From the NCBI GenBank assembly GCA_950097015.1, contig CATNEN010000025.1, positions 3,348,001 to 3,412,000 of the forward strand: 64,000 nucleotides of DNA. The letters run 5' to 3'. The stretch comes from Macrostomum hystrix (lineage: Eukaryota; Animalia; Platyhelminthes). A program made the translations under genes and the position numbers. Below, piece by piece: positions 20,801-57,900 of this stretch; position 1 is the first letter of the stretch, and every line of letters starts with the position of its first letter. The notes below the pieces were generated by a model. That model saw nothing but the letters and a program-made list of their open reading frames with translations. It was not told the DNA's origin and did not search any database.

Positions 20801-23800
20801 CTAACATTGACAGCCACCTCACTCCTCCTGCCTCACACTAGACACTAACATTGACAGCTACCTCACTCCTCCTGCCTCACACTAGACACTAACACTGACA
20901 GCCACCTCACTCCTCCTGCCTCAGACTAGACACTAACACTGACAGCCACCTCACTCCTCCTGCCTTACACTAGACACTAACACTGACAGCCACCTCACTC
21001 CTCCTGCCTCACACTAGACACTAACATTGACAGCCACCTCACTCCTCCTGCCTCACACTAGACACTAACATTGACAGCTACCTCACTCCTCCTGCCTTAC
21101 ACTAGACACTAACACTGACAGCCACCTCACTCCTCCTGCCTCAGACTAGACACTAACACTGACAGCCACCTCACTCCTCCTGCCTTACACTAGACACTAA
21201 CACTGACAGCCACCTCACTCCTCCTGCCTCACACTAGACACTAACATTGACAGCCACCTCACTCCTCCTGCCTCACACTAGACACTAACATTGACAGCTA
21301 CCTCACTCCTCCTGCCTTACACTAGACACTAACACTGACAGCCACCTCACTCCTCCTGCCTCAGACTAGACACTAACACTGACAGCCACCTCACTCCTCC
21401 TGCCTTACACTAGACACTAACACTGACAGCCACCTCACTCCTTCTGCCTCAGACTAGACACTAACACTGACAGCCACCTCACTCCTCCTGCCTCACACTA
21501 GACACTAACATTGACAGCCACCTCACTCCTCCTGTCTCACACTAGACACTAACACTGACAGCCACCTCACTCCTCCTGTCTCAGACTAGACACTAACACT
21601 GACAGCCACCTCACTCCTTCTGCCTCAGACTAGACACTAACACTGACAGCCACCTCACTCCTCCTGCCTCACACTAGACACTAACACTGACAGCCACCTC
21701 ACTCCTCCTGCCTCAGACTAGACACTAACACTGACAGCCACCTCACTCCTTCTGCCTCAGACTAGACACTAACACTGACAGCCACCTCACTCCTCCTGCC
21801 TTACACTAGACACTAACACTGACAGCCACCTCACTCCTTCCTGCCTCAGACTAGACACTAACACTGACAGCCACCTCACTCCTCCTGCCTCACACTAGAC
21901 ACTAACACTGACAGCCACCTCACTCCTCCTGCCTCACACTAGACACTAACACTGACAGCCACCTCACTCCTTCTGCCTCAGACTAGACACTAACACTGAC
22001 AGCCACCTCACTCCTCCTGCCTTACACTAGACACTAACACTGACAGCCACCTCACTCCTTCTGCCTCAGACTAGACACTAACACTGACAGCCACCTCACT
22101 CCTCCTGCCTCACACTAGACACTAACATTGACAGCCACCTCACTCCTCCTGTCTCACACTAGACACTAACACTGACAGCCACCTCACTCCTCCTGTCTCA
22201 GACTAGACACTAACACTGACAGCCACCTCACTCCTTCTGCCTCAGACTAGACACTAACACTGACAGCCACCTCACTCCTCCTGCCTTACACTAGACACTA
22301 ACACTGACAGCCACCTCACTCCTTCTGCCTCAGACTAGACACTAACACTGACAGCCACCTCACTCCTTCTGCCTCAGACTAGACACTAACACTGACAGCC
22401 ACCTCACTCCTCCTGCCTTACACTAGACACTAACACTGACAGCCACCTCACTCCTTCTGCCTCAGACTAGACACTAACACTGACAGCCACCTCACTCCTT
22501 CTGCCTCAGACTAGACACTAACACTGACAGCCACCTCACTCCTCCTGCCTCACACTAGACACTAACATGACAGCCACCTCACTCCTCCTGTCTCACACTA
22601 GACACTAACACTGACAGCCACCTCACTCCTCCTGTCTCAGACTAGACACTAACACTGACAGCCACCTCACTCCTTCTGCCTCAGACTAGACACTAACACT
22701 GACAGCCACCTCACTCCTCCTGCCTTACACTAGACACTAACACTGACAGCCACCTCACTCCTCCTGCCTCAGACTAGACACTAACACTGACAGCCACCTC
22801 ACTCCTTCTGCCTCAGACTAGACACTAACACTGACAGCCACCTCACTCCTCCTGCCTTACACTAGACACTAACACTGACAGCCACCTCACTCCTCCTGTC
22901 CTCACACTAGACACTAACACTGACAGCCACCTCACTCCTTCTGCCTCAGACTAGACACTAACACTGACAGCCACCTCACTCCTCCTGCCTCACACTAGAC
23001 ACTAACACTGACAGCCACCTCACTCCTCCTGCCTTACACTAGACACTAACACTGACAGCCACCTCACTCCTCCTGTCTCACACTAGACACTAACACTGAC
23101 AGCCACCTCACTCCTTCTGCCTCAGACTAGACACTAACACAGACAGCCACCTCACTCCTCCTGCCTCAGACTAGACACTAACACTGACAGCCACCTCACT
23201 CCTCCTGCCTCAGACTAGACACTAACACTGACAGCCACCTCACTCCTCCTGCCTCAGACTAGACACTAACACAGACAGCCACCTCACTCCTTCTGCCTCA
23301 GACTAGACACTAACACTGACAGCCACCTCACTCCTCCTGCCTTACACTAGACACTAACACTGACAGCCACCTCACTCCTCCTGTCTCACACTAGACACTA
23401 ACACTGACAGCCACCTCACTCCTTCTGCCTCAGACTAGACACTAACACTGACAGCCACCTCACTCCTCCTGCCTCACACTAGACACTAACACTGACAGCC
23501 ACCTCACTCCTCCTGCCTTACACTAGACACTAACACTGACAGCCACCTCACTCCTCCTGTCTCACACTAGACACTAACACTGACAGCCACCTCACTCCTT
23601 CTGCCTCAGACTAGACACTAACACTGACAGCCACCTCACTCCTCCTGCCTCAGACTAGACACTAACACTGACAGCCACCTCACTCCTCCTGCCTCAGACT
23701 AGACACTAACACTGACAGCCACCTCACTCCTCCTGCCTCAGACTAGACACTAACACAGACAGCCACCTCACTCCTCCTGCCTCAGACTAGACACTAACAC

Positions 23801-27020: not shown

Positions 27021-27771
27021 ATAATCAATGTTGCAATCTTTATGAATTAAATCTTTAACATTCATCATGTCCTCTAACTAACTGAACCAGTTTTGTGAAC
27101 TCTTGAAGATTTTTGTCATGAAAAGGACAAAGATTTCGGCGGAATTGGCACACTTAACTTTATTATAATCACATTCGCTTATAAAACTGTTTGAGCTCTT
27201 AGCACGAAGAGTATGCCAGCTGCACCTGTTAATCTTTTTCCTGAACTCTCATTACACTTGCCGCTAATTGCTTGAAGAATTGCATGCCGCACTTTTACCT
27301 GCCGGCGATTGACGTCTAACCTGCTAATCTTTTCATTATTTTGCTTTTGCAACCAGAAATCAGCGCCTCCGGCCTTTAAATACCAAACAGAGAAATTCCT
27401 TCGCATGGCAGTTGATTTAGTGCATTTTCACTGGACTACGAATGACGGAAACTACGAAAAAAAAACACTTTTTCCACGTGATTGTTTCTGTTTTACTTAA
27501 CGGATGAGTTGGAAAGCCCGATATTTAACCCACCAATTGCCGCTATGCTTCAGTGATTCTGTGTTAAATAAATGCAAAAATACACTGTTTGCAAACTATT
27601 CTTTTAATGAAAAACAGTTATGTAGTTGCTTGCGATCCTACACAAAGTATCCATGGTCTACTATGGGCTATTTGTCAGACAATCGAGCAGCCAATTCGGG
27701 ATAAGAATTTAACAGTACAAGGGAAAGAAAATTTAATCGAGAGATTGAGCCAGTGGGAGAGTATATTTCGA

Positions 27772-29782
27772 CAAGAGGAGAGTAGATGGGGTAGAGTGAG
27801 ACAAGAGGAGAGTAGATGGGGTAGATTAATACAAGAGAAGAGTAGATGGGGTAGAGTGAGACAAGAGGAGAGTAGATGGGGTAGATTGAGACAAGGGGAG
27901 AGTAGATGGGGTAGAGTGAGACAAGGGGAGAGTAGATGGGGTAGAGTGAGACAAGAGGAGAGTAGATGGGGTAGAGTGAGACAAGGGGAGAGTAGATGGG
28001 GTAGATTGAGACAAGGGGAGAGTAGATGGGTTAGATTGAGACACGGGGAGAGTTGATGGGGTAGATTGAGACAAGGGGAGAGTAGATGGGGTAGATTGAG
28101 ACAAGGGGAGAGTAGATGGGGTAGAGTGAGACAAGGGGAGAGTAGATGGGGTAGATTGAGACAAGGGGAGAGTAGATGGGGTAGAGTGAGACAAGGGGAG
28201 AGTAGATGGGTAGAGTGAGACAAGGGGAGAGTAGATGGGTAGAGTGAGACAAAGGGAGAGTAGATGGGGTAGAGTGAGACAAGGAGAGAGTAGATGGGCT
28301 AGAGTGAGACAAAGGGAGAGTAGATGGGGTAGAGTGAGACAAAGGGAGAGTAGATGGGGTAGAGTGAGACAAAGGGAGAGTAGATGGGGTAGAGTGAGAC
28401 AAAGGGAGAGTAGATGGGGTAGATTGAGACAAAGGGAGAGTAGATGGGGTAGATTGAGACAAAGGGAGAGTAGATGGGGTAGATTGAGACAAAGGGAGAG
28501 TAGATGGGGTAGAGTGAGACAAGGGGAGAGTAGATGGGGTAGAGTGAGACAAAGGGAGAGTAGATGGGGTAGAGTGAGACAAAGGGAGAGTAGATGGGGT
28601 AGAGTGAGACAAAGGGAGAGTAGATGGGGTAGAGTGAGACAAGGAGAGAGTAGATGGGGTAGAGTGAGACAAAGGGAGAGTAGATGGGGTAGAGTGAGAC
28701 AAAGGGAGAGTAGATGGGGTAGAGTGAGACAAAGGGAGAGTAGATGGGGTAGATTGAGACAAAGGGAGAGTAGATGGGGTAGATTGAGACAAAGGGAGAG
28801 TAGATGGGGTAGAGTGAGACAAAGGGAGAGTAGATGGGGTAGAGTGAGACAAAGGGAGAGTAGATGGGGTAGAGTGAGACAAAGGGGGAGTAGATGGGGT
28901 AGATTGAGACAAAGGGAGAGTAGATGGGGTAGATTGAGACAAAGGGAGAGTAGATGGGGTAGATTGAGACAAAGGGAGAGTAGATGGGGTAGAGTGAGAC
29001 AAAGCGAGAGTAGATGGGGTAGAGTGAGACAAAGGGAGAGTAGATGGGGTAGAGTGAGACAAAGGGAGAGTAGATGGGGTAGAGTGAGACAAAGGGAGAG
29101 TAGATGGGGTAGAGTGAGACAAGGAGAGAGTAGATGGGGGAGAGTGAGACAAGGGGAGAGTAGATGGGGTAGAGTGAGGCAAAGGGAGAGTAGATGGGGT
29201 AGAGTGAGACAAAGGGAGAGTAGATGGGGTAGAGTAAGACAAAGGGAGAGTAGATGGGGTAGAGTGAGACAAAGGGAGAGTAGATGGGGTAGAGTGAGAC
29301 AAAGGGAGAGTAGATGGGGTAGATTGAGACAAAGGGAGAGTAGATGGGGTAGAGTGAGACAAAGGGAGAGTAGATGGGGTAGAGTGAGACAAAGGGAGAG
29401 TAGATGGGGTAGAGTGAGACAAAGGGAGAGTAGATGGGGTAGAGTGAGACAAAGGGAGAGTAGATGGGGTAGAGTGAGACAAAGGGAGAGTAGATGGGGT
29501 AGATTGAGACAAAGGGAGAGTAGATGGGGTAGAGTGAGACAAAGGGAGAGTAGATGGGGTAGAGTGAGACAAAGGGAGAGTAGATGGGGTAGAGTGAGGC
29601 AAAGGGAGAGTAGATGGGGTAGAGTGAGACAAAGGGAGAGTAGATGGGGTAGAGTGAGACAAAGGGAGAGTAGATGGGGTAGAGTGAGACAAGGGGAGAG
29701 TAGATGGGGTAGAGTGAGACAAAGGGAGAGTAGATGGGGTAGAGTGAGACAAGGGGAGAGTAGATTGGGTAGAGTGAGACAA
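27772..29782. repeat. 30-bp minisatellite (GAGAGTAGATGGGGTAGAGTGAGACAAAGG), ~67 copies
   Basis: Tandem array; explains the 521/616/674-aa ORFs. Confidence 0.98.
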
Positions 29783-30645
29783 GCTATTCCAGTATTGTAA
29801 ATTACAAAATTGCAGCCCAAATAAAAGAAGCAGGGGAATGACGAGACCACAGTTATTGTTTGACAAGGCCAGTGAGAACACTGTTATTAATGGTTTGTTT
29901 TATTTCTATGAAAGTTTTCTCAGTTGATCTATAGTTTGAAAGTGACAGTGAGAACACTGTTTTTTATGGTTTGTTTTATTTCTTATAAAGTTTTCTCTTC
30001 AAAGACACGGAAAAAAGATTACTAAGGCTCGACAAGCAAGTTTTAAAACTTTGTTGGATTCAGTTACTGAGCCAAGTGCTCATTCTCACAAGAGTAAGTA
30101 GTTAAGCTTTTCAGCATTGTACATGTTCCAGAGTAGTAGCAGCGCAGGAAAATCAAAATGTTTTTAAAATGATAAACTATAGAGGCCGTAAGTAAATAAA
30201 GTTTGTTAATTCGCAGTGCGGATCAGGTCAAGCTCGCCAGCAGTTGCAGATTTAGGTCGAGTCGAATCTGGGCATCCGCAATCGCCTGAAGTGTGGCGTA
30301 GTTTTCATTGGATGCAAATTTAACAGATTCATCCAAACCTTTATCAGTAAGCTGCATTATCTAGGCTTGCATTCTCAATATGAAATAACACTAAATAGAT
30401 TGGTATAGATTTCTATGCAGATTAAATGGCTACAACTACGAGTATCATTTCTAGGGTGTATTAGCTACTGTTGATTGACAGCTTCATTTAGCAACTGATT
30501 ATCAGTGCCTAGTCAGGATTTGATAGCTAAAATCTCATAATTTTACACACAAAGTCGTGTTAGATAATTATAGACTATACCTCAACATCAAAGGCCTAAA
30601 AACTATGATGGAGCTTTGATGTTGTTCTGGATTTGAAATCTTGAC

Positions 30646-33600: not shown

Positions 33601-35391
33601 GGTTCAAGGTCAAAGACAGAGGGTAGCGAATGATACAATGTCAAAGACAGAGGTTAGCGAATGATTCAAGGTCAAAGGCCAAGGATAGCGAATGATTCAA
33701 GGTCAAAGACAGAGGTTAGCGAATGATTCAAGGTCAAAGGCCAAGGATAGCGAATGGTTCAAGGTCAAAGACAGAGGGTAGCGAATGATACAATGTCAAA
33801 GACAGAGGTTAGCGAATGATTAAAGGTCAAAGGCCAAGGATAGCGAATGATTCAAGGTCAAAGACAGAGGTTAGCGAATGATTCAAGGTCAAAGGCCAAG
33901 GATAGCGAATGATTCAAGGTCAAAGGCGAAGGATAGCGAATGATTCAAGGTCAAAGACAGAGGTTAGCGAAAGATTCAAGGTCAAAGCTCAATGTCAGAG
34001 AATCAATAGGGGCCAACCCAAGATCTGGTATGACTTTTAGCGCGATAACTCACCATTAATCTTGCACACAATGCCCGCGATGGAGGCTTCAAACTCGCTG
34101 AGCGTCTGCCGGATGTCGCGCAGCAGGCAGCGCTCGCGCGCCTCGAGCTCCCGGCCGAACAGGTCGCGCAAGGTAGAAGACACGGCCTGGCTGAGTATTC
34201 TCTTCACCTCGCGAGGGTCTGTATTAGAATCGGCGATGTTAAATTTCTCCGAACATTCTACTTCAAGTAGAAATGTAAAAATATCGAATCAGTCAGAAAA
34301 GCACACAGGGGCAGACGCTCAGCTCACCAATGACAAGCATCGGTCGGCTGTTGCTGGAGCTGCGGACGCGTGATGCCGGTTGCTCGCGGTCAGCTCCTTG
34401 GAGTTGCGGCTCCGACCTTTTTAACTCGCTGTCGGTATTCGCCTCGGATTGATTTGACGGAAAGCTAAATGACGAGGCTAGGGAGGCAAATTGAAGGTAA
34501 AAAGATGTTGTTGATAAAATATATTGTGTAGGCGGATGCAGACAATGTATCGCACTCACTTTTCTCGTTGGATGCTAAATTTGCCAATTGGATTTCTACC
34601 GTTGTAGCTCTTGCGGAATCGGTCGGTTTTTGCTGCTTCTGGTTCTGTTTTTGTTGATTCGGCTGCTGAATTTTCTGGTGCTGCTGTATGTGCTTATGTT
34701 GGTGCTGCTGGTGGTGCTGCTGCTGTTGTTGTTGCTGCTGCTGCCGCTGATGCTGTTGCTGCGGCTGCCACGAAAACGCTTCGAAGCGAGCACTCGGTAC
34801 TAAAATGGGAGTCGATCGACTGCTAGTCGGACTCGCAGCCCGGGCCAGAAGTTCGCCGATGCCCTCAAGAAGACTGCTAGCCACTTCTAGCTCCTGGCCG
34901 TGGGCCATGGGCTTTTGCTGCCGCTGCTGCTGCTGCTGCTGCTGCTGCTGAGGCTGGTGATAGTTCTGCTGGTGACGCTGGTTGTCACGCTGCTGATACA
35001 GCTGACGCTGCTGGCGCTGACGCGATGAAGGCTGACGCTGGGCATCGATGGAGCGGCTGTACTCCTGGTAAAGGAGGCCGATGTCAACACTATCGGCTGG
35101 CTGAGCCAGGGTGGCTTTGTGCAGATTTTCCTTGACTAAGCAATAATCTTAAAATTTAGATTAATCTGCCAGCGAGCTCCAGCTAATCCAAAACTAATTT
35201 AAAACTATTTTAAAGCGAAGCTGCTCTGAAATTGGCTGCATTTAGAGAGTGCCTACGGCTTCAAGTAAATGCTTAAGGCCATAGACTATGAGAGCGCTTC
35301 GGCATTGAATCTGCTTCAAAATTATCCATCCTAAATTAGGTGCAGTGAGTGGCCTGATGGAAACTCGATTGAAAGAAGCCTTGCATTTAAT

Positions 35392-38760: not shown

Positions 38761-41225
38761 ACAACTGATATCTGATATCCTACTGAGACTTTAAAAAGAC
38801 TGGCACAGTGGCGTCAGCACAGTCTGTAGGTTAGCTGGACCTCCTGCACTTTAATTCCACCTCCTATCTGTGAGACTCTAAAACAGACTGGCACAGTGGC
38901 GTCAGCACAGTCTGTAGGTTAGCTGGACCACCTTCAAGTTTTATGTGCACCGATTTGCTTACGTGGTAGACTTTGGTATTCGGTCCAGGAAAACATTTTT
39001 CTGAAATTTCGATTAAGGAGGTTTTTGTTGAGGCTCTTTGTTAAAGTTTATTCTACGTATATTCATGCCGAATAACAAATTTGTATTGGTACTTACTGCA
39101 GTTGGAATGCAGTTTTTCGACAACGTCGTCTGGAATATTTTTCTTTAGCTCCCAAGTATTGTTAGATCTAAAAGTCGAGTATTGTTTTATTACGTAGTAA
39201 ATTGTATGGCCCGTTTTTGCTGGAGAATGAAAACGCGAGGAAATTAAATTTTTTTCAATTGAAACAAATTTTTCATTTGGTGCTTACATTGATTATCCAG
39301 TCCACTTGATGTAGTATTTGTTACTGTTGCACTTCTCTATTTTCTCGACAAAGAACTGGGACTCTGTCTTGGCAGGATTTCTCTTGCGAGACATTCCTGT
39401 CTCCTCGGGGACTTGACTATTGACGAATGTTTCAGTCTAACCGAGATGCGAAATTAAGTGGTCTATGTAAGCCTGTTTTGCTTAGACCAAGGGGTTTTAC
39501 TTTGATAACGCTGCCTCTCTCTGACTCATTTAGTAGACGGACTGTCTGTCCCTTAGACTGCTTCTATTGGCTGGCATTCCCAGTGGGGGTGGTCCGAGTT
39601 TTACCAACCTCTTTCCGAAATCAGTCCTTAACCAGTGCAGTTCTAGTCTGTGTGAATTTGTTATGCGCTTTCAGTGTCGTTTACATGGACCTCAACAGAC
39701 GATTTTTGTGCGTGCAACCGGGACCCAGAGTAAACTAAAATAACAAATATCGATCCCGTCTTCCCTTTGGGCTTGGTGTGTTGCTCACCCCACCAAGGTT
39801 TCCTGAGAGCAAAATCTTCCTTCCTCTCAGAGCCGAAACTCTCAATCTTCTTTTCTTATTGTGGTTCAGTGTCATTTCAGTGTCAACAAATGGACATTCG
39901 AATGGCCCATGAGTTTGAACTTCCGTTTAAGTTCGATTTCCGTTTAATTTATTATGTATTATTATGATCAAGCTACGATAAATAGCTTAATTGTAGTAAT
40001 AGTACTAATCTAGGCTGTAGTGTTAGTACCTCAGACTCAGAGAAGAATCGTATTACAAGCCCTAGATATTTCGGCTTAACCGTCCTGACAATTAAATTTC
40101 CATAAATCAAATATAAATAAAAAATAAATCAAAGTGAACTAAAAGAAGCTTATTATCTAGATAAATATAATTGTGTAAAGGAAAGTCGATAGGCCTGTAG
40201 GATACAATATCCGTTCAACCTACTATAAGTAGCTTATGCGACAAAGGAACCGTCTTGGGAATAGTTTTCGGCACAAAACCGTGGGAAGGCTTTAAACAAA
40301 TATTTGCACTGTGTCTGCCTAATTTAAGATCGCGGAAATTCAATATATTCGTTTTTTGGCGTAAAATATGTCGCAAAAAATAAATTAGCAACAGACTGAA
40401 ACAGACTGGAAAAGACAAGATTCGGAAATTTTCGTTTACAATTTTTGTTTAGCTGGACCTCTTAGACCCAGTTTAGGTGGACATCGAAAAAGTCCATGTA
40501 AACTGAATGCATTTTTTTCTGAAGAAGAATGCCGATGATTGATGCAATTTGCAGCACGCCTTCGTGACATGCCCTGCTCTGTTTTGTGGTCCTTATAAAC
40601 CACTCAACGTTGTCTGGAGCAAAAATATTCGGTGGTCCATCTAAGGGATCTACCTTAGCTGGAGAGGTCCAGCTAATGCGGCAACTGAACCGACGAAAGG
40701 TCCAAGCAAACACACAGACAGGCAGGCAGGCAGAACTCTGAACTCTGACTATTATCGATCACTAGCGATACAGTTAATAAAGATATTTTCAAACCCGGAT
40801 GTTAAATAATTGAGTTGGAAAAATGCGGATAAGTTGTTAATGCAACTACTCGCACTCAACTCATTTTCCACACAACGAGTTATCCAGTGGAAGGACTTCC
40901 ATCTACGTGTCTGCAGTAACAATGAAAATTGAGCTTCTATTTATTTTTTTTCTACCCGGTCGCTAAAAAATTGCTATTGGCCAACACGTGGGCACTGCAC
41001 TCCACTAAGCTGTTAATAGTGTTTTGAGTTGTAAAACGCCCCCAGTTAGCTAAATTTAGAGGTGAAAAACCTGTTACAGCCAGTTCAGGCAGCAAGCTCT
41101 GGCGTGTCCTGCGCGTAATAGAACAGACGCCTTTGAAAAAAGTATATATATATTGAAGCCGTCGGTGAGAGTTGAGAAGGCCGGATTTCTGGGACAGGGG
41201 CAGCTTTCCACATCCCAGAGTAAAC

Positions 41226-41840
41226 ATGCGGCTTCAAAGCGGAGTTCTTCAACTACTAGCATTGTTGCTCAGTGCAGCGGCTGAGACAACTCCGCATCGT
41301 CTGGTCCGCTGTCCAGCGGAGTTCGGCACTCTGGTAGAGTCAGCTCCGGCCTCAATCGATCTGCCGGTGCTGACAACGGCGTCGGGTGTGCGGCTGCGAA
41401 CCGTCCGTTCAGCGGACAGCAACTCGGAACTTTTCGTTGACTCTGTTGGACAGTTGAGATTCAACGGCGCCATGAGATCCACTTTGGCCTCCGGCTCCGC
41501 CAATGAGCAGTTCAGCGGACCGCATCAGCTGGAATGCGAAGACAGCGAACATGACGCGGTCACCTTCTCACTGTACATCCGGCTGCCGACTGCCCTGAGT
41601 TCGACCCCTGCATCAGCGGCCATTGCAGCCACGCGCATTAGCTCGCTGGATGTGGGTCTCACCTGCCTGATCCTGCTGCTCACGCTGATCTGTTTCTGCC
41701 TGTCCGGGTGTCTCGTCTGCATCCATCGGCGAAGATTCAGAAGCAGGCAGGAGCAGACATCGAAGAAGACGGTTTTCAACGGACATCAGCAGCTGCTGAC
41801 GCAGGCTCCTCATTCGCTGGTTGGAGTAGATGATGTTTGA
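41226..41840 (+). CDS. Small type-I membrane protein, single degenerate cadherin-like domain (paralog 1, 204 aa)
   Basis: Signal MRLQSGVLQLLALLLSAAA; RLVRCPAEF..PVLT..DSVGQLRF..FSGPHQLEC; TM then RRRFR; TATA at 41143-41152; intronless. Confidence 0.85.
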   Translation: MRLQSGVLQLLALLLSAAAETTPHRLVRCPAEFGTLVESAPASIDLPVLTTASGVRLRTVRSADSNSELFVDSVGQLRFNGAMRSTLASGSANEQFSGPHQLECEDSEHDAVTFSLYIRLPTALSSTPASAAIAATRISSLDVGLTCLILLLTLICFCLSGCLVCIHRRRFRSRQEQTSKKTVFNGHQQLLTQAPHSLVGVDDV

Positions 41841-42899
41841 ATTGAGTCTACTTCGACTTCATATTTAGCTGTCATATTTTATAACTTTAGTCTCAATTTT
41901 CCGACATGATTTCAGTTGTAGTTTTCTTACATTCATTAGTTAGCAATAGCCCAACGAATACCTAATGGTACTCGTACAAGAAAGTTAAGAACTGACAGGA
42001 AAACTAGCGTTGTTCATAAAAAGACTATTTGAAATTAGAGAAAAAATACCACAATATAAATGACAATACAAATAATGTGATTTTGTGCGTAAAAATATAT
42101 TCAATATTTAACAACACAATCATTTTATTATTCGCCATTAAAAACTTTTCGTTCTGCGTGTGTTTTTTGCTTTCGCTTCTGCTTTCGTTTTTACACCTTT
42201 TTGATTCGGTTGTTTAGTGCCAACTCGCAGTTGCGATTAAATAAATAAAATAATATACAAGTAATATAAATAAAACCATACAACTATAAAAATATTCTAC
42301 ATTCTTCAAAAATTAAAACACATTTGTTATTATTACAGACGGTTTATTTCAAAAGGGCAAGCATAAACTGTTCAAACATATTTAAACGTAAATTTAAATT
42401 CACGTTGAAAAAATCAACCGGTATTACACCCATGTCAAAGAGCAAAATTGACACATGAAACACCAAAAAGTACGGCTCGTACCATTTTATTTTCTTCATA
42501 TTAAGCCACAAAACGGTTAAGAATCAAAGTTCACCAAGACGCATTTATTGTTAATAGCATATTTAATAAGCAGTTGAGAGTGAAAAGTACTAGACGCTTT
42601 TTACTATAGTAATTATTTCTCCGGGTTGACTGGCAGAAAAACTCAAGCAGTTTATCGTAAAAAGTACAATTTTCTGGTGAATACACGGCAAAAATGAAGT
42701 GCACATTAGGACGATGCTTTTGTGAACAGATGCGCAAAAACACCTAGTTCTCAGTTCTTAGAGAGATTATTCACAAAAGTCTGAGTATTTATGCTGCTTA
42801 ACACAGGAGAATGTGAGGCTCGTTATACAGACCAGCTGCAGAGAAACCAAATCGCATCGAAACACAATCACAGTTGCTATTCATAATTGCGTTAAGCAT

Positions 42900-43580
42900 T
42901 CAAACCTCGTTGAAAAGTGGGTCGATGCTGGCCGCACAGGCGGGTCCCGTGTAGATCCTGGCCTTCTGTTGCCGCCTACTTGGGACGAATCTGAAGCTGC
43001 AACATGCGAATGCGGAGACAACCGCGCCGCAGACGAGGAGGGCTACGACGAAGCCGATTCCGAAGCCGAAGGCAAACTCGGATGCATCTTTGCTGGCCTT
43101 GCCATGCATGGTGACATTTTTTACAGTCGCTGAGGGTCGAGAAGTTGCGGAAGCTCCGGCAGTTGTGGCTTCAGTTAGAGCGGCGGTGATCAAGTCGACA
43201 GTTTCGGTGTAAGAAATCGAGGCGGCCTTGATGAAGAGCGCAAAAGGAATCGGCCTGTTGTGGTCGCTGTCTGAGCACAGCAGAACGTGAGGTCCGCTGT
43301 AGTGACCATCGATGGTGCCGTTGAAACGCAACTGACCGGCTGAGTCCAGCTGCAGCTCCGAGTCCTTCAGGAAGCCGACAGTTCGCAGTTGCACGCCCGG
43401 GCCCGCTGTCAGTACCGGGTCGTCGGGCGAGGCCGGGAGTGACTTCACCACATTGGCGAACTCGGCCGGGCAGCGGACTAGACGCTGCAGTCCAAGCGTC
43501 GGGTTGCTGGCTGCGTTGCTGGCTGCACAGAGAGCTGCGAGCAGCGTTTGAAAAAAGAATTTTCTGGAGGTCGCTGCCAT
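42900..43580 (-). CDS. Small type-I membrane protein, cadherin-like domain (paralog 2, 226 aa)
   Basis: Signal; RLVRCPAEF..PVLTAGPG..DSAGQLRF..YSGPHVLLC; S/T/A stalk; TM; tail IYTGP..DPLF; TATATATA at 43662-43669. Confidence 0.87.
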   Translation of the reverse strand: MAATSRKFFFQTLLAALCAASNAASNPTLGLQRLVRCPAEFANVVKSLPASPDDPVLTAGPGVQLRTVGFLKDSELQLDSAGQLRFNGTIDGHYSGPHVLLCSDSDHNRPIPFALFIKAASISYTETVDLITAALTEATTAGASATSRPSATVKNVTMHGKASKDASEFAFGFGIGFVVALLVCGAVVSAFACCSFRFVPSRRQQKARIYTGPACAASIDPLFNEV

Positions 43581-44956
43581 TTTCCTATAAGGATCGAATC
43601 GTCAAGACAAGATGAGAAGCGAGAATTTTGAAACTGCAGAAACTGTGCCAATTATGCGAGCTATATATAGAGCCGATGCGTGATAATCTCGGGAAAACCA
43701 TGGCTTTTTAGACTTCGCTTTGGGCGATGACTCTCGGATAGTCCAAAAACTTTTCAACTATAAAGAAAGAGGAATTATCGAAACAGAGAATAAAATCGTA
43801 CAGTTCTAAAAATAGATAAAACGTACGTTTTTACTAGCGGCTCATTGTGCGTTGCAATTGCAGCTTTCTGCTTCTGCTCAGTTTGAACTGTACTAGCCCA
43901 GTGCAAGCATTCATTGGAAAATCCAAGACCACTAGACGCGATTGTCTAAAACGCTTTGTATTCTGTAAAAGAAATATTAGCTCATTTAGCATTCTGAAAA
44001 TTCTCAAGAATCTGCTATTATAAGCGAATTTTGTGTCCTTAGTATGTTTTGGCTCAACATTCTGATAGATTTTCTTTGACCGATTGCACTAAAAACGTTC
44101 TAGTTTGGACTTCTTCCTGTTGTTAATTTAGTTTTCCATCCTGTCGTGATCTGTTTTTATAAAAAATCCACTTTTTTCCTATTCCACTCTTGATTCGAAT
44201 GAAGGCACTGGTGCGAGATGTCGTCACATTTAAACCCATTGTTTGTTATTTAATTTGTAATTTCTTAACAGTAGGGGATGGACCACCGGGGTATTTCAAA
44301 CCCAACCTGCACTGCCTGCTTGACGATAGTTCCCAAACCGAATGACCGATTGTTGTGTTCTTGTCACACTTTGTGTCAGAGCACATTTATTAGTATCGTA
44401 ACACAGACTCGAAGCCTAACGAACACAAAGTGATATACACTACAGCTGCGACACAATTGTACGAGTAATGTACTCTCTAACTACACATAGCTATTCTCAA
44501 TTTCTCAGTTAATAGACCGCATCTGATACAAACACAACCACATTGTATTCATGTGTACACAGCCACAAACACAACTGTAGCGGCGATTTCTGATACGGCT
44601 TTATCCATGATTTTTGATACCATTCAGGCTAGGCCCGTGATTCATTTTTAGGTATATGTCGAGCTTTCGGCATCCTCAAGTTTGTTGCTGTTACAAAAGA
44701 AGAAATTCCTGCTATATTATCAGCCTGCCACTATGTTGGTAGTAGCTAGTACGTTGGTATTTATTTTAGATAGATAGAAATAAACTCAGGATTAAAGGAA
44801 GAAAATATCGATCTACATAGAAAATGATATGATATTTAAGATGTCTCTTGTAACGCATGTCACCTAATATATAAATGGTCGGATCTAATCATGAAAATTT
44901 AGTAGTGGTGTATTGAATTTCAAGTGGCGTAACATCTGAAGGTGGACTCAAAATGG

Positions 44957-45706
44957 TCACAGGTTGAGAAAGCCGGGCTGCTTGGTCTGGCCGAACAGAG
45001 GATCGGCGCTGCCTCTAGCAGGCGGCACATTGTAGATTGAACCCTTCATGCCGCGAACGCTGCGAGACGCCCGAAGGCTGCGGCGGCTGGTGATGGTTAG
45101 GGCGACTGCCAGAACGATCGAGATTAGGAGTAGCAGAGAAGCGACGATGGCGAGGCCAACGGTGAGTGGATCTTTGAAGTGGCTGCCAAAGACGCCTGCT
45201 TCGGCAGGGCAGGCAGTTTGAGCGGCCGTTGGAGTGGCGTCGGTGACACGAGCAGTGGACGAGACATCGGTAGGAGTAGAGTTGGCAGCGTCGGTGGGAA
45301 CTGTCGGGGTACCTGACGGAGGCTTGGAGTCTTGGCCAGTCTGTGCGAGCCTGATGAATAGCGAGAAGGTGATCAGCCTGCCACTGACACTGTCGGTGCA
45401 CAGCAGCACGTGCGGCCCGCTGAAGCGCCTGTCGACGGACTGAGAGGCGGAGTCCTTGAACATCAGCTGGCCTGTAGCGGAGTCCAGCTGCAGCTCCGAG
45501 TTGCTCTGAAAGTGTGTAGTCTGCAGGTGAACACCCGGCCCAACGGTCAGCACCGGCTGATCTGGGGCCTGCAGCGGCACCACCACGGTTTCGAACTCGG
45601 GTGGGCATCGGACCAGCCGTTGCGGCCCCGATCGGGGTCGGATTGCAACGGCATCGAAGGCGCTGAGCATTGTCAGCAGCCACAGCAGCACTTGTAAGAG
45701 ATACAT
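44957..45706 (-). CDS. Small type-I membrane protein, cadherin-like domain (paralog 3, 249 aa)
   Basis: Signal MYLLQVLLWLLTMLSA; same domain; long T/P/S stalk; TM; tail IYNVP..DPLF; TATAAA at 45806-45811. Confidence 0.87.
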   Translation of the reverse strand: MYLLQVLLWLLTMLSAFDAVAIRPRSGPQRLVRCPPEFETVVVPLQAPDQPVLTVGPGVHLQTTHFQSNSELQLDSATGQLMFKDSASQSVDRRFSGPHVLLCTDSVSGRLITFSLFIRLAQTGQDSKPPSGTPTVPTDAANSTPTDVSSTARVTDATPTAAQTACPAEAGVFGSHFKDPLTVGLAIVASLLLLISIVLAVALTITSRRSLRASRSVRGMKGSIYNVPPARGSADPLFGQTKQPGFLNL

Positions 45707-46308
45707 CTCGAGTTAAAGGGCCGCTTTAAGATTTTTAATTCTTAGTAAGCACGTTAGTGAAGGTTGCAAGTGCCAGCCGTGGAAAAACTTTTGCGGTGTC
45801 GACAATTTATAAGAGAGCTTTTAAACAGCTCTTTACCCTCTCGTCCCGCGGGTGTCCCGCGGGCAATAAGAGTGTAAGCGTATCATCATGATGCTAATAA
45901 TAGCTATCTTTGCTATGTTATGAGGGAGGAATAAGGTGCTATTATATTGTGTGAACATGGAACTTCATCGTATGAGTCATATCACAATTTGCTGCGAACA
46001 GAAAGTTACGTTGCGTTAATTTTATATTTAGTTAAACATTAGCGAACGTAGCTAAAGTAGGACAGTGAAAGAACATGAATCTCGAGAATCGAATTGTATA
46101 ATATGATATATAAATTGTAAATTAATAAATAAGTAAAAAAAATAATATGTGCTGAGAAATTGAAGACAACCAAGTGAACCCATTTCATATCTCACATTTC
46201 TCTCAATATTTTATCTCTGGCTTACCACTGTACAACGATCATAAACTTATAAATTATACTGTCGATTATTTTCTGTACATAAATTGTAAATAAAAGAAAA
46301 AATAAATT

Positions 46309-46661
46309 GGCAATGTTCTACTTCCGTTCGTTATATTATTTTTTTGTTTGCAAACGACAGATAACGACAAAAAACAAGTTTAACGGCAACAAAAAGTCAG
46401 TAGTTTGGTCACACAGTTCTGAAAAGTCTTGGTCAGTCTTTCTTCTTTCAAACCGGGTAATAGTGCCTAATCCAGTAGAGGAGGGCACCGAAGCTATTCT
46501 TGGGGTATAGACAGCGCCATTTGCCAGATTTTGCCATAGACATAGATCCAAGTGTCAAGTCACGGCAAAGCCACGTCAGCACAACTTTTTCAAACTCAGA
46601 ATCCATGTGTGGCACGAATACAAACGAAAAAAAATGTAGCGAACGGAAGTAGAACATTGCC
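46309..46661. mobile_element. MITE, 353 bp, 22-bp perfect TIRs (GGCAATGTTCTACTTCCGTTCG), 8-bp TSD AATAAATT
   Basis: 46309-46330 is the exact reverse complement of 46640-46661; AATAAATT at 46301-46308 and 46662-46669. Confidence 0.88.
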
Positions 46662-47313
46662 AATAAATTCGATAAGCATATGGTAGCAGTCATTTATTGT
46701 GTGTAAAACACTGGCTATAGGCTGCTTAAAATTTTAGTATAAAGGACCAGCTCATCGAACCCCCATCAAGATATTATAGGAGACTACAGTCATACAGCAG
46801 GTATCTGTTAGATAATAAAAATTAAAGCTTATAACGCTTATACTGACTAAGTTTCAGTTAGATTCGAATTTAAATGATAACTAAAAATTTTCCACCACTT
46901 GTAACTTTCTTCTGATTGACCTGCAAATAAGCCAAAAAGAGGCCATAGTAAAGAAATCGAACGGTTCCATTCTTTATATTTGTAATTATGGCAATACTTC
47001 ATATTCAATTATTAAATGGGCCAATATATACAAAAACAATTGCAACACATGCGAAATATAAGCATCTAGAAATGTTTAGATGCAAGATGTAATAACGCAA
47101 AAACTGTATGCCTAATTACGGATACAACCTAATCGTATTACGCGATAACAAAATAGCAGACTGAGAGGAGAGATCTGTCACCATGACACAATATGATATA
47201 ATTGTGAAATTGGGATGGGGTGGTTCATGTGGAGTGAGCAGAGGTCAATACGGGTGTGGAGTGGGGTCAGGCAGATCAAGCTGTCACTGTCGTTGTCTCT
47301 CTTTGGGTTTACA

Positions 47314-47907
47314 CTACACAACAACTTTTTCTATTGGAAGCTTCTGCGAGGCGATGAAATTCCGGAAGTCTCGGTAGGGTCGATCGGCCGTCAGAAACTG
47401 GCTTCGTCGACTACGACGATGACGAAGCGACACTGTCAAGATCACTATTAGGGTGACTGTGAGGGCGCCCGCGAGGGCGAAGGCGACGCCAATGATTAGG
47501 GCGAAAATTTCGCGAGTCTCATTGCTCAGCAAGTATAACTTATGAGTGCTCAGGCTAATTAGTAGCGAGAAGGTGGTCAGCCTGCCACTGACACTGTCGG
47601 TGCACAGCAGCACGTGCGGTCCGCTGAAGCGCCTGTCGACGGACTGAGACGCGGAGTCCTTGAACATCAGCTGGCCTGTAGCCGAGTCCAGCTGCAGCTC
47701 CGAGTTGCTCTGAAAGTGTGTAGTCTGCAGGTGAACACCCGGCCCAACGGTCAGCACCGGCTGATCTGGGGCCTGCAGCGGCACCACCAGGGTTTCGAAC
47801 TCGGGCGGACATCGGACCAGCCTGCGCGGCCCATCCGACGGTCGAGGCGACGCTGAGACGTCGGCGCTGAGAGAGCAGAGAATGACGAGCAGCAGCGGTA
47901 GAGTCAT
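47314..47907 (-). CDS. Small type-I membrane protein, cadherin-like domain (paralog 4, 197 aa)
   Basis: Signal MTLPLLLVILCSLSA; domain nearly identical to paralog 3; very short stalk; TM followed by RHRRSRR. Confidence 0.87.
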   Translation of the reverse strand: MTLPLLLVILCSLSADVSASPRPSDGPRRLVRCPPEFETLVVPLQAPDQPVLTVGPGVHLQTTHFQSNSELQLDSATGQLMFKDSASQSVDRRFSGPHVLLCTDSVSGRLTTFSLLISLSTHKLYLLSNETREIFALIIGVAFALAGALTVTLIVILTVSLRHRRSRRSQFLTADRPYRDFRNFIASQKLPIEKVVV

Positions 47908-48718: not shown

Positions 48719-51325
48719 TCAGCGCTGTCTGAAAGGTGAGAAAAAATATTTAGTTTGACAGCTCAGTTTGGCAGTTTGGCAACAGTTCAGCTCACAGAAG
48801 TCAGTGCTGCTTTGCATCGAATTTCTAGCCGTAGTGCAGGAGTTGGCAGCGGGTTCTGATGTCAACGATCTGCGGCTATCAGTAAATTCGCTCGCCTCGC
48901 CGTAAACGTCATTTTCGCCTTCGCTCGACGAGGAGCCGTAAGATGAGTACAGAAAGTGGAGATACTTATCGTCGTCAATTCCACCAGCGTCTTCGCCACC
49001 CACTTCGCCGCCGCCGATTCCACCAGCGTCTTCGCCACCCACTTCGCCGCCGCCGCCTTCGTCGCTGCATTTGGCGCAGCCTTCGCTGCCGCCGTCCTCA
49101 CAGGCACTGACCACATTGTTGCACGCTGTGTCAAGCTTAGCAATGCTAAAGCTAGTTTTCGAGGAACACTCAGCAAAAATTTCGTCGCTGCCAACATCGC
49201 CGGTGTTGGCAGCTACGGTCAGTTCTAATGAGTCGCCGTCGGTCGGACTACGAAACGAAAGCAGCTCCCCGACACCAGGACTGCTGGACGATTCCAGTTC
49301 GTCTGCCACCTGCTGGCTCAGCCAGTGATCCGAAATTTGTAGTAATTAAATACACTATAATTAAAGCAGCAACTTACTAAAACTTGTGGGATTTTGAATA
49401 AAAGCAGAATTACTCACCAGCATGCTGAGTGCGGCCCACTTTGATGCCGCATTTGAGGTCGCTCGTTTGTGCAAAGAAGACCATTCAGTCTGAGGAGCGG
49501 AATGAGAATAGGCATGAGAATAGACTATAAATCCCAAAATATCGCAATGAGCACCTGTAAATCCAAAAAGCTTCGTGCCAGACACAATAATAATATTCTC
49601 AAGAGATCAATAAGAATATATTTATTTATAAGGAAATAAGAGATACCAGCTCAGAGATTGTCCATTCAGGCAACTAACCACGGTAGATGTGCTGACTGAG
49701 TCGCAGTCGGGAATCGATGCCGGATTGCCCTCGGACGAAGCTGCGTCATCCTCAGGGATTAACGATATGGACGCCCTCTCAGCTCTCTCTGTCAGCCACG
49801 CAGATAAGTCAGCTGCATCTGCGGCAGTGGAAGCTTCAGGTCCAGCAGCAGAAGCAGCGGCAGCGTCAAGACCAGCGTCAGCGTCACAGTATTCATCCGC
49901 ATCACCGTCAGCAGCGTCTTCAAAAGCTCTAGTGACAGCGTCAGCTTCAGCGTCAGCATCTGTAGTAGCAGCCGTGTCAGCGGCAGCGTCAGCAATAGCA
50001 GCGGCATCCGTCGATATGGCAACTTCTCTGATTGATGCTGAAGTCACCACGTCATCTTCTGACGTCTGACGTCTGACCTCATCGTCCTCATTGTCTGGCT
50101 CGTCGTCAGCGTCGGCGCAGCTCTCCCGCAGCGCGACTGGCTGAAGCTGGTGCGGCTGCCCTTTTTCTGCTAATCGAATAAAATGATTCGAGTTTAGAGC
50201 CAGGCCCACTCCATGCAGAGAAAAATAAACACTAAAAGTCCTGACTGCACAGGTTTTATAAAGATTCCTGCAAGACTGATTCCGCTCACCATTCCACACA
50301 TCTCCTTGTGTAGCTGGCTGATCAGTCCTTGACGTATTTAGCGTCGTATTGTCGCGCACAATGTCCAAGTCGTTAACCACTTCGGCTCTAAACTGGATGA
50401 CGACCGACTGGGAGCCGTCCGCGTCTGCACCGGGCCGCGGCAGCCGAACCTGACTGGTCAGCGGTCCGGTGTAGGCCAACGATGAGATCCACACCCGACG
50501 TCCACTGCGCCGATGATCGAACAGAATCCCGCCGACGCCGCCAGAGTCATCGACCTTTTGAAGCGTCAGCTGGAAACTGAGCAGCGGCCGGCAGTGCAAA
50601 CACAGTGGCGACTTCACCGGATGTTTGGTGGGGCAGCGCCATAGGCGATAGTCGCGGCCTGTCAGAGCGGCCAGGCTGGCAAAGCCCGAGTTGGGCAGTC
50701 GCTCCATCGGCTGGTGCTCGGACGGATGGCCGTAGCCGCGGTGGAAGAAGTAGGACGCCGACGCTTCCTGATCGGAATCTTCGCACATCTGGTCCTCGCG
50801 AAAGGCTTCGCTCCAGTCGACGATTTTATCGTCGAGGCCGAGACGAAAATTTCGACGTCCATGGCTGACGTCGCGCCGGAAGGTGACATCGGTTGTGGTA
50901 ACTATGATTTCACCACGCACGCGACAGACCTGGAGACGGTGCAGAGCTTTGTCCATCTCGCCGCCGGCTTTTTCGGAGTTGCTGGCAGTATTGGTGGCAC
51001 AGAAATCATTTGATGTTGAGCAGACCGGGTCGCAGATGTTGCTAATCATTTTAAAGTCAGCCAAGTCGGCCTGGGAGTCTTTACTCTCCAGGTTGAAGGG
51101 CGTCCCAGTTGCAATTATCAGATTGGAGCTGTCGCTGGACTCGAAAAGATTCTCAGACTTGCGATTTTCAATCTGCCCCATCTCAAAATCACTCTTGTCA
51201 CCTCCGCAGCATTGAAACTGCCTTTGCCTGCGACGATTTTGAATTGTGATGACGCTGAGAACTAACGTCACAGATAAAACAACGCAGACTAAACAAGTCG
51301 CAGCGATGACCACTGCGAAACTCAT
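48719..51325 (-). CDS. Probable 3-exon gene: N-terminal TM, divergent RLxRCP domain, acidic/Ala-rich low complexity (~769 aa)
   Basis: Exons 51325-49679 (GTG|GTTAGT), 49489-49418 (CCTCAG| acceptor, CTG|GTGAGT donor), 49309-48719, all phase 0. Confidence 0.65.
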
Positions 51326-54996: not shown

Positions 54997-57900
54997 CTGG
55001 TGCGAAACAAATGATTTGGATTTTGGGATAAATCCTAGATTCGAAACAGGCGATTTGGATAGTTCCGTGTTTTAAACAGGTGAGATGGGATAAATGAAGT
55101 TTAAATGACGCAAATGAAGTTTCGCACCTGTATTTCGGCAGCCCGCACATCCCCCTGACTCAAAAGAAGCTTTAACTGGCCAGGCTGCAATTCTTTCAAC
55201 ACCGTGGCCCGCAGACGCATCTGAGGCTCTTTTTCGTCTAGGAACTGCTGACAGCTGGCGAATGCGGAGCCGACGCGACTTAAGAGCTCCTGAAGCCGGC
55301 CCAGCTTGAACAGCTGAGAGCCGCAGCTGCAAGGAAAGGGTAGCGAAGAGTGAGCACAGTGAGCACATCGTTCAATATGGCCCTTGACTACCGTTGAATC
55401 TCAATCCTGACTCTCATTCATTTTTTACTCCTGACTCTTGTTCATTCTCACCCCTGACTCTTGTTCATTCTAACCCCTGACTCTCATTCTTTCTCACCCC
55501 TGACTCTCATTCATTCTCACCCCTGACTCTCATTCATTCTCACCCCCTGACTCTTGTTCATTCTCCCCCTGACTCTTGTTCATTCTCACCCCTGACTCTT
55601 GTTCATTCTCACCCCTGACTCTCATTCATTCTCACCCCTGACTCTTGTTCATTCTCACCCCTGACTCTCATTCATTCTCACCCCTGACTCCTTGCATAGT
55701 TAAGTATTAGCAATGAATGAATATTAAAGCTAGAAGCAAACCTCTCTCGCATTGAGGCCAGCCAGCGTCCGTGCAGTTTAATCTGTTCGGCGTGACTTTG
55801 ACGAATCTGGGCCAACCGTTTCAGAAGCGGCTCGGACTCTGCCAGGCTGGTAAAGGTGGATTCAAGAATGCCGCAGGCTGTCTCTAGCCAGGTGTGCAGA
55901 TCGCGCAGCCGATTGAGCCAATCGTGCAACTGGGACTCGATGCTTTTCAACAACTGAATCTTATCGGCTAGGAGGCCGCACTCGCCGCTAACTGCGGCCA
56001 CTCGCAGGTTAGCCTGAGCAGTCTCAGAGTTGGCGCGCATTTCAATCAGTTCGGCGCCAATTTCCGTCAGCGCCTCGCTGGCTGTGGACAGGCGGGCCAG
56101 GCAGCGAGCTAGACGACTCCAATCGGCTGCTAGACGGCTGCGCGGCGACGTATTAGCCAAAGTGCAAGAAGACAACGACGTAGACGACGACGATAACGAA
56201 GACATCGATTCTGGCAATGTAGTCGACGATGATAAAACTATTTCTAAAACGGCGTCGGAATCGTGCGCCTCGCCTACCAGCTCGACTTGACGGCGTCGGG
56301 CCTCTCTGGCCAGCTGCGCCAGCCGGAAAGCCTCCGTCGGGTCGATGTCGCCGAAACGAGTAACGTATCGACGCAGCTCGGCTGACAGGCCGGCAAATGC
56401 GGCCTGCGACTCGGCCAGAAGCCCGTCGGCTGACTCGGACACCGGCTTGGTAGCAATGGACTCCGACTCGGACACGGAAGCTGAGGCTGCATTGGTTTCT
56501 CCAGGCTGCGATGAGCAGAAATAGGATTAGAGATGGTAACCCAGTGCTTGATTGTCTGAGTTCACTAACCAGTGCTGTTTAGTCAGTGGAGTCGGTGAGT
56601 ACTAGCGGTTAACGCGTCTGTCTCTCGCACCAAGGTCCCTGGGCTCGATTCCAAGGCTAGGCCACACTTATTTAAGGGGCACCCACGGAGAGAAGGCTTG
56701 GGGGCTTGTTGTGCAATTTACGCCCTTAAGGGCCAACCTCCAAGGCACAGTGAAAGTGTGCACTGCCTGACGATGAGAAAGTCAGGGCAGATGTGAACGT
56801 GTGCCTGCGTACAGTATCTGTGTGTGCTCAGGAGTCAGCGAAATGTGGGCAGAATTGCGAGTCTAGTGTCACCAATTGATGTGCCATTGCCCGCAGCCCT
56901 CCTGCAAATTTCAACTAATTACGGTCTCTTTTTGGCACAACACTTCATTATAGTATTTCATGAGTAAATAAAATGATGTGTAATACCACGTACAAATCTA
57001 ATTTGAAAGATACGAACTCCCGACCCCTCTAACCGCTGGACTGTATAAGCTCTTATTTCATAGTCAACGAAGTTTTAAACTAAAAACAATAAAAGAATAA
57101 ATTAGTTTATTGAACAGAGAATAGACTATTTGGCGGGTCGCGTGCAATCGGAACACATAAGTAGCCTAGAGAGTTAGACCGAGAGAAGGTGCACAAATTT
57201 TATTGTTGAGTCAAAAACCCCAAAGCTTGCGAACAGCTGTGTGGATTGAGCACAGATGACTCATACACACTAAGGTACTACTGGGCCAACAACCCGGCTC
57301 TTAGTGTGGGATCTCTAGTTCCGCTTAGGACTAAAGGGGAAAATGTATAGACTTTGGAAAATTAGAAAAAATGCTAGATGAGTCACACGTTTTAGTTAGC
57401 TATGGATTACAGCGATACCTTAGTAGTGAGGATCTGCTGAATAAGGCGATGCGCGCACCATAGGAACAAATTGTCCATCATTAAAATGTCAATAAAAATC
57501 AAATAAAAAACGAATCAATGAGCAAACTGTTCTACCTGTCCGGCATCGAACTGCTGCTGATCCGCCTCCCACTGCAGGTGACTGTCGTCAAGGCGCTCTT
57601 CCGCAGCCTCGTCGGCGCCAACCGGATACAGCTGGGGCTGGTAGTGATCCCACAGCTGGTCCAGATCATCGGGTCCCTCGGCGCAGCTGGCCACGCATTC
57701 CTCCTCGTTGTCAAGGCCTGAGGAATTGCGGATCAAGTTGATAGATTTTGATCACGTGACCAACTAGCTAAAGTACAAATCATGACTATACTATCAAATA
57801 AGGACACTGATATTAGTAGCTTAATGCTATTCTTGCATAAACAATTGGAGGCTTAAAATATAATAGACTAATAAGCTTTCGGCTATAGATAAAATTGCTG

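Follow-up and report, generated by a model that had tools for sequence, protein, structure and literature searches.

A tandem cluster of four intronless genes for small single-pass surface proteins in Macrostomum hystrix and its counterpart in Macrostomum lignano

The sequence considered here, called the window, comprises 64,000 nucleotides of the genome of the flatworm Macrostomum hystrix (contig CATNEN010000025.1, positions 3,348,001 to 3,412,000 of the forward strand), and positions are counted from its first letter. Between 41226 and 47907 it contains four open reading frames (ORFs), m1 to m4, for related small membrane proteins. An initial inspection of the letters, the sequence-only reading, had described a common layout with one domain holding two invariant cysteines, and the ORF list, alignment, tblastn, hydropathy and charge analyses place all four ORFs where they had been described and confirm the domain and its cysteines. 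The 93-aa domain of m1-m4 aligns with 39 invariant columns, including the two Cys; they also align over their whole length, and tblastn between the paralogues gives E values of 1e-17 to 1e-59. A tblastn search with m1-m4 did not reveal a fifth copy in the 64-kb window.

The four genes and their products

The coding sequence of m1 (41226-41840, forward strand) specifies 204 aa from its ATG, divided into a signal peptide, the domain (DNA 41292-41585), a 27-aa stalk, a transmembrane segment at about 41667-41723 and a tail with the motif GHQQLL and the C-terminus DDV. The other three genes are on the reverse strand. In m2 (42900-43580, 226 aa) the domain (43224-43490) is followed by a 55-aa stalk with two N-glycosylation sequons, a transmembrane segment at about 43002-43058 and a tail with IYxxP...DPLF that ends in NEV. 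The largest protein is encoded by m3 (44957-45706, 249 aa), with the domain at 45347-45625, a Thr/Pro-rich stalk of 64 aa, a transmembrane segment at about 45098-45154, the tail motif IYNVP...DPLF and the C-terminus LNL. The m4 gene (47314-47907, 197 aa) has its domain at 47551-47829, a short stalk of 18 aa, a transmembrane segment at about 47440-47496 and a tail with RPYRDFRNF...QKLP that ends in VVV.

TATA boxes had been claimed for three of the genes, and TATA-like boxes indeed precede the ATG by 83 nt in m1 (41143-41149, forward strand), by 89 nt in m2 (43663-43669, reverse strand) and by 105 nt in m3 (45805-45811, reverse strand). For m4 there is no such box, just a TATTATAT-like stretch that precedes the ATG by about 100 nt. 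A polyadenylation signal ATTAAA follows m1 at 42137-42142 (forward strand).

The protein architecture was examined by hydropathy and charge analysis over eight family members, with signal cleavage sites read by the -3/-1 rule. Each protein starts with a hydrophobic leader that has a small-x-small cleavage site, after which domain, stalk, transmembrane segment and tail follow. The domain ends with F-x-L-x-I-R-L, where the stalk begins. Its cysteine pair is invariant in all family sequences, with a spacing of 65-75 residues, and the first Cys follows the predicted mature N-terminus at a distance of only about 9-14 residues; a disulfide between the two is plausible. The stalks contain up to 63% Ser/Thr/Pro/Ala and few N-glycosylation sequons. 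They measure 18-64 aa in m1-m4 and 18-93 aa across the analysed members, and their sequence is highly variable as well; conservation is higher in the domain and in the tail motifs. A single 19-residue segment with a Kyte-Doolittle value of 2.5-3.1, accompanied by a juxtamembrane Cys, forms the transmembrane helix. Because a net charge of +4 or +5 directly follows this helix, the positive-inside rule predicts type I topology, and with a signal peptide, one transmembrane segment and a positive tail of 30-45 aa the proteins have the features of type I single-pass membrane glycoproteins. The tail motifs are specific to each paralogue and kept across species (IY/IFxxP...[DE]PLF in the m2/m3 type, GHQQLL in m1 and RPYRDFRxF...QKLP in m4), and the C-terminal residue is Val or Leu in all members.

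Evidence on expression comes from two small public runs of one 2020 study, X4 and X5, whose assembled contigs were compared with positions 41180-47179, a range that spans m1-m3 and the 3' side of m4. Transcript-like contigs without mismatches cover m1 (41199-42160), m2 (42453-43534) and m3 (44844-45402 and 45373-45778), and the 3' untranslated region (UTR) of m4 (46990-47179) lies, also without mismatches, inside contigs of 609-617 nt that continue into the gene. Depth in the intergenic bins of this range is zero. The contig ends adjoin the predicted TATA and poly(A) signals: 5' ends at 41193 and 41199 lie about 50 nt downstream of the m1 TATA-like box, that of m3 is 33 nt upstream of a contig end, and the X4 contig end at 42160 is 23 nt past the start of the m1 polyadenylation signal. 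Since the contigs are limited to ORF and UTRs, unlike what low-coverage DNA would give, the four genes are very probably transcribed and unspliced, with the reservation that the library type is unrecorded. Colinearity of the contigs with the genome over m1-m3 and the single-exon gene models of Macrostomum lignano agree with the earlier description of the genes as intronless.

Runs X1-X3 of a 2024 study, filed under two other organism codes, yield short contigs that match parts of m1, m2 and m3 with 0-2 mismatches, so these samples contain either the species of the window or one very near to it. Short dispersed intergenic repeats occupy 44310-44351 and 46309-46589 of the window. Many run contigs match these repeats only and then continue into unrelated sequence, in several variants.

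Relatives in Macrostomum lignano and domain-restricted conversion

A HMMER search with the domain profile against 1.84 billion representative proteins found three true relatives, P0001, P0002 and P0003 (E 5e-26 to 8e-22), and a fragment, P0008, all of them hypothetical proteins of M. lignano; no credible relative outside this species was detected among these representatives. The M. lignano genes are BOX15_Mlig008551, Mlig010170, Mlig009548 and Mlig007760 (PAA68283-5, PAA80333-4, PAA85389-90). They are true orthologues and paralogues that share architecture, four-gene cluster and neighbour gene with the window: three homeologous loci (L001-L003) each carry the same cluster beside a gene for 666-671 aa that is 48% identical to the window ORF 49622-51325. 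Both species have four intact ORFs with conserved synteny. Differences are that orthologues are only 42-51% identical, that the distal two-gene segment is inverted between the clusters, that the intact m2-like gene of M. lignano (L002 17171-17965, reverse strand, 264 aa) is unannotated in assembly GCA_002269645.1, and that one homeologous m4-like copy (P0008, L002 8631-8873) is frameshifted to an 80-aa product. The presence of the family in M. lignano shows that it is not confined to the genome of the window. With M. lignano hypothetical proteins as the only relatives, in a syntenic cluster, the family looks restricted to Macrostomum on the comparison of two species.

A word-indexed protein search with m3 alone gave no match, not even to the M. 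lignano relatives. The tool is not sensitive enough for this, since these proteins were recovered afterwards with the full-length alignment. Four further HMMER matches, P0004-P0007 (TSP1, NHL, bacterial repeat and tail-fibre proteins, E 1e-7 to 2e-4), were rejected as spurious because weak scores sum over 5-17 near-identical repeats. Neither is P0010 (UniRef A0A1I8IJA8, 1147 aa, named ZU5 domain-containing protein and placed in the 90% cluster of P0002) a longer relative. It is a chimeric older M. lignano model, in which an m1-like protein (residues 1-232) is joined to the m2-like gene read in antisense, and it has no Pfam domain. Later parts of it match the window at 34058-34219, 14151-14465 and 9920-10207, which suggests that synteny reaches further. 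Both species have long ORFs in alternative frames or in antisense that overlie family genes (window 45015-45683, reverse strand, over m3; L002 9994-10731, 16024-16680 and 17232-18182) and are probably a by-product of codon composition; one of them was taken for coding sequence in P0010.

The family is undescribed. It is annotated solely as hypothetical proteins, the four M. lignano gene numbers were found in no paper text nor in the examined supplements, including that of a positional RNA-seq paper, and a title and abstract search combining flatworm-specific with cadherin returned nothing relevant. The sequence-only reading had anticipated a lineage-specific, undescribed single-pass surface family, and this is borne out: the genes are very probably transcribed, keep their synteny in a second Macrostomum species and evolve under purifying selection. 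In family size and range, the counts are four copies in the window by tblastn and relatives in M. lignano only by HMMER.

Selection was assessed from the ratio of nonsynonymous to synonymous divergence (dN/dS). Between the window and M. lignano the domain gives 0.22-0.58, in a comparison of two species where synonymous divergence (dS) is saturated for most pairs (0.7-1.5); between M. lignano homeologues the corresponding ratio pN/pS is 0.16-0.69 at a dS of 0.03-0.06. Ratios below 1 point to purifying selection, and these are coding genes under moderate constraint that are evolving fast.

Ectodomain and tail have evolved along different lines. The domain tree unites all four M. lignano domains in one clade (92/96) and places window m3 and m4 together in another (100/99). 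The tail scores, in contrast, pair orthologues (70 for m4, 73 for m3 and 36 for m1 with their M. lignano counterparts). A tract of 281 bp in m3 (45348-45628, reverse strand) is 95% identical to one in m4 (47552-47832, reverse strand) and coincides with the domain, its edges are sharp and its flanks are not alignable. Between these genes dS is 0.12 in the domain and 1.35 in the rest of the gene. Similarity between M. lignano paralogues is likewise limited to about nt 30-340, with 83-89% identity, the m2/m3 pair excepted. Ectodomains that group by species, tails that group by orthologue and the sharp m3/m4 tract together indicate domain-restricted gene conversion in both lineages. Among the tested results, the most interesting is that converted heads and orthologous tails separate so cleanly.

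The fold of the ectodomain and the explanations considered

The sequence-only reading regarded the domain as a cadherin-like repeat that lacks Ca2+-binding motifs. Sequence methods do not connect it to a described family. Neither the full proteins nor 11 isolated domains match Pfam, even at E<=10, and cadherin-named Pfam matches of the full proteins concern transmembrane or tail families only, well below cutoff. The cadherin repeat profile PF00028 does not match the four full proteins or the 11 domains at E<=10, nor does the He_PIG profile PF05345. Hidden Markov model (HMM) searches of PDB sequences with two profiles of the Macrostomum family return chance matches only (E>0.3) and no cadherin. 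The domain is present once per protein according to tblastn and HMMER, and not as two or more tandem extracellular cadherin (EC) repeats. Of the Ca2+-binding motifs (E11/PENE, LDRE, DxD, DxNDNxP), no conserved acidic motif is found at the expected positions in 10-11 aligned domains. This upholds the earlier statement that DxNDN, DxD and LDRE are missing, and the domain would be Ca2+-independent, as follows from their absence. The LDRE-like VDRR, which had been listed as a family motif, was not sustained: it occurs only in m3 and m4, and is no family feature because these two share the converted domain. The immunoglobulin (Ig) superfamily fares no better, since there is no Ig Pfam match and no invariant Trp, though the Cys pair has Ig-like spacing.

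More can be said from structure prediction, at low confidence. Two AlphaFold2 models, of the m3 domain and of the m2 domain with its mature N-terminus, rest on shallow alignments with 10-11 sequences of two species, and both are all-beta. Their best Foldseek E values, 0.15-0.19, are not significant, nor are the TM-scores of 0.48-0.55 in an ESM-Atlas shape search, which leads to Cadherin and He_PIG clusters. Among the 50 best VIA rows for model 2, about 42 belong to cadherin EC or cadherin-like domains, including EC1 of mucin-like protocadherin, protocadherins, CDH23, PCDH15, the cadherin-like domain (CLD) of RET and that of dystroglycan, whereas Ig and FN3 domains are rare in the top rows in spite of their far greater number in the PDB. 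The language-model neighbours of full-length m3 are He_PIG, dystroglycan, sarcoglycan and cadherin clusters, with scores of 0.80-0.81. The models make a beta-sandwich likely, and a cadherin-type topology is the best lead for it, with the chances about evenly balanced. The name mini-cadherin is weakly supported: matches of the models are mostly of cadherin type, all below threshold, and no sequence method detects cadherin or He_PIG.

In view of the above, we consider it fairly probable that the cluster consists of four intronless, TATA-driven, transcribed genes for small type I surface glycoproteins restricted to Macrostomum, which form a set of cell-surface recognition or adhesion receptors. 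That adhesion or recognition is their actual function is a more tentative proposition, with the balance somewhat against it. Several points weigh against this picture. The mean predicted local distance difference test score (pLDDT) is only 52.6 for the m3 model and 59.5 for the m2 model (64-72 in its core), and the segment with the first Cys falls below 50. The language-model scores lie in a range that shuffled sequences often reach, and a language-model search with the domain alone gave no usable match. The tail motifs did not match any of the motifs that could be compared. Finally, X4 and X5 are not on record as RNA libraries, and dS between the two species is largely saturated.

Other explanations should be weighed against the same data. 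The domain could be an extremely diverged true homologue of the cadherin clan, either an EC repeat or a dystroglycan-type CADG/He_PIG domain as in alpha/epsilon-sarcoglycan; it would have shrunk to a single repeat and would no longer bind Ca2+. The language-model neighbours of the full-length protein would fit this, and so would the C-terminal half of the alignment, where the spacing is EC-like (L-x-L-D-S-x-G-x-L ... hydrophobic-x-hydrophobic-x-C-x-D ... F-x-L-x-I). However, PF00028 and PF05345 are silent for 11 members, the family HMM finds no cadherin among PDB sequences, the motifs DxNDN, DxD and LDRE are missing or lack conservation, and a common fold alone does not prove homology, which leaves common descent with cadherins somewhat unlikely. 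A domain of Ig type with the canonical B-F disulfide, in a receptor like CD8alpha or CD7 with one Ig domain on an O-glycosylated stalk, is unlikely. The spacing of 65-75 residues and the hydrophobic-x-C-x-D/S pattern around the second Cys do fit an Ig F strand, and titin, myomesin, nectin and IgLON domains are present among the weak Foldseek rows. Yet a first Cys so close to the mature N-terminus leaves scant room for an A strand, the conserved Trp of the C strand and any Ig Pfam match are absent, and the VIA rows favour cadherins despite the abundance of Ig and FN3 structures.

The proteins might also be fast-evolving reproduction- or defence-related surface proteins, of sperm and egg or of an epithelial glycocalyx, with the stalk as main functional part and without a role as signalling receptors. 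This would account for the low identity of congeneric orthologues (42-51%), for dN/dS values up to 0.6 and for the very variable stalks, and rapid evolution of reproduction-related genes in Macrostomum is documented (PMC7336406). On the other hand, domain and tail motifs are more conserved than the stalk and the examined supplements do not list a family gene, so that we regard this explanation as quite improbable. Hardly credible is an origin as chance or decaying frames or as a mobile or viral insertion without host function. The absence of introns, the genes' own TATA and poly(A) signals and the frameshifted M. lignano copy could be read in this way. Against it stand the intact state of four ORFs in both species, their conserved synteny, a dN/dS under 1, transcript-like coverage and flanks free of repeat or transposon features.

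If the cluster encodes a set of recognition or adhesion receptors, the following picture can be drawn. Each protein starts with a cleavable signal peptide. Behind it follows a predicted all-beta ectodomain of about 90 aa that would be held by one conserved Cys pair, of which the first member lies close to the mature N-terminus and the second in the penultimate strand. The ectodomain would most likely be a cadherin/He_PIG-type beta-sandwich that does not need Ca2+. A stalk of variable length, probably O-glycosylated, could raise this disulfide-bonded domain above membrane and glycocalyx, and the juxtamembrane Cys could carry palmitoylation. Gene conversion would keep the ectodomains of the paralogues alike within each species, so that these may bind the same ligand or each other. 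The differing tails would couple this common surface to different cytoplasmic partners or sorting routes, and the C-terminal Val or Leu is a possible PDZ ligand or endoplasmic reticulum export signal. The most specific version, a genus-specific receptor set with a new or unrecognisably diverged head in the form of one disulfide-stapled, Ca2+-independent cadherin-like repeat, with recurrent conversion that keeps one common ligand-binding ectodomain in the four paralogues and with a conserved tail motif for each of them, must be considered rather unlikely as a whole.

The layout resembles that of stalked single-domain receptors and of mucin-like protocadherin. Cadherin EC proteins such as the latter (CDHR5, PF00028) have tandem repeats, whereas the Macrostomum proteins have a single domain, with a Cys pair that EC repeats do not possess, without Ca2+-binding linker motifs or a Pfam match, and with a distribution limited to the genus. 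Comparable too are the type I membrane glycoproteins with dystroglycan-type or He_PIG domains (PF05345; alpha/epsilon-sarcoglycan, dystroglycan), where a cadherin-like domain free of Ca2+ motifs adjoins a mucin-like region; such domains appear among both the language-model and the shape neighbours. The Macrostomum proteins are much smaller and have no sequence match to them, and nothing points to a complex of the sarcoglycan type. CD8alpha combines one disulfide-bonded beta-sandwich with an O-glycosylated stalk, a transmembrane segment with juxtamembrane Cys and a short tail. This is a functional analogy in layout; without the conserved Trp and a Pfam match as Ig signature in the Macrostomum family, homology is not suggested.

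Surroundings of the cluster and implications

The 567-aa ORF at 49622-51325 (reverse strand), which adjoins the cluster, opens with a transmembrane-like stretch; RRRQRQ comes next, and the C-terminal part is acidic and rich in Ala and Asp. Pfam gives no match for this ORF, which may be the transmembrane and cytoplasmic exon of another single-pass protein. An exon for a hormone-receptor (HRM) domain is located at 9846-10412 (forward strand, E 5e-12), and a sub-threshold match to CATRA-C at 55678-56475 (reverse strand, E 9e-5, 23.6 bits against a cutoff of 24.6). Minisatellites occupy 1692-8544, 20098-23893, 27770-29782 and about 30 other places, with units of, for example, 12 bp (577 copies), 44 bp (86 copies) and 30 bp (67 copies). 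They account for blocks of extreme GC skew and for a number of long spurious ORFs, for instance those that overlap one another at 27826-29881.

Animal genomes contain many orphan surface families, and finding another is therefore a moderate surprise. If the most specific version of the picture is correct, the family would follow a design of one ligand with several outputs, the inverse of clustered protocadherins. If the cadherin-like fold holds, it would represent a single Ca2+-free, disulfide-stabilised cadherin-type module that serves as a stand-alone receptor head. Macrostomum is a flatworm model that is transgenic and amenable to RNA interference. With no introns and about 0.6-0.75 kb per coding sequence, the genes of the compact family are easily cloned, and their products contain a domain unknown to Pfam. 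Concerted evolution restricted to the domain, as opposed to orthologous tails, is directly testable in the many Macrostomum transcriptomes. As lineage-restricted surface proteins, the members of the family are candidates for a part in the cell recognition, reproduction or adhesion biology of Macrostomum.

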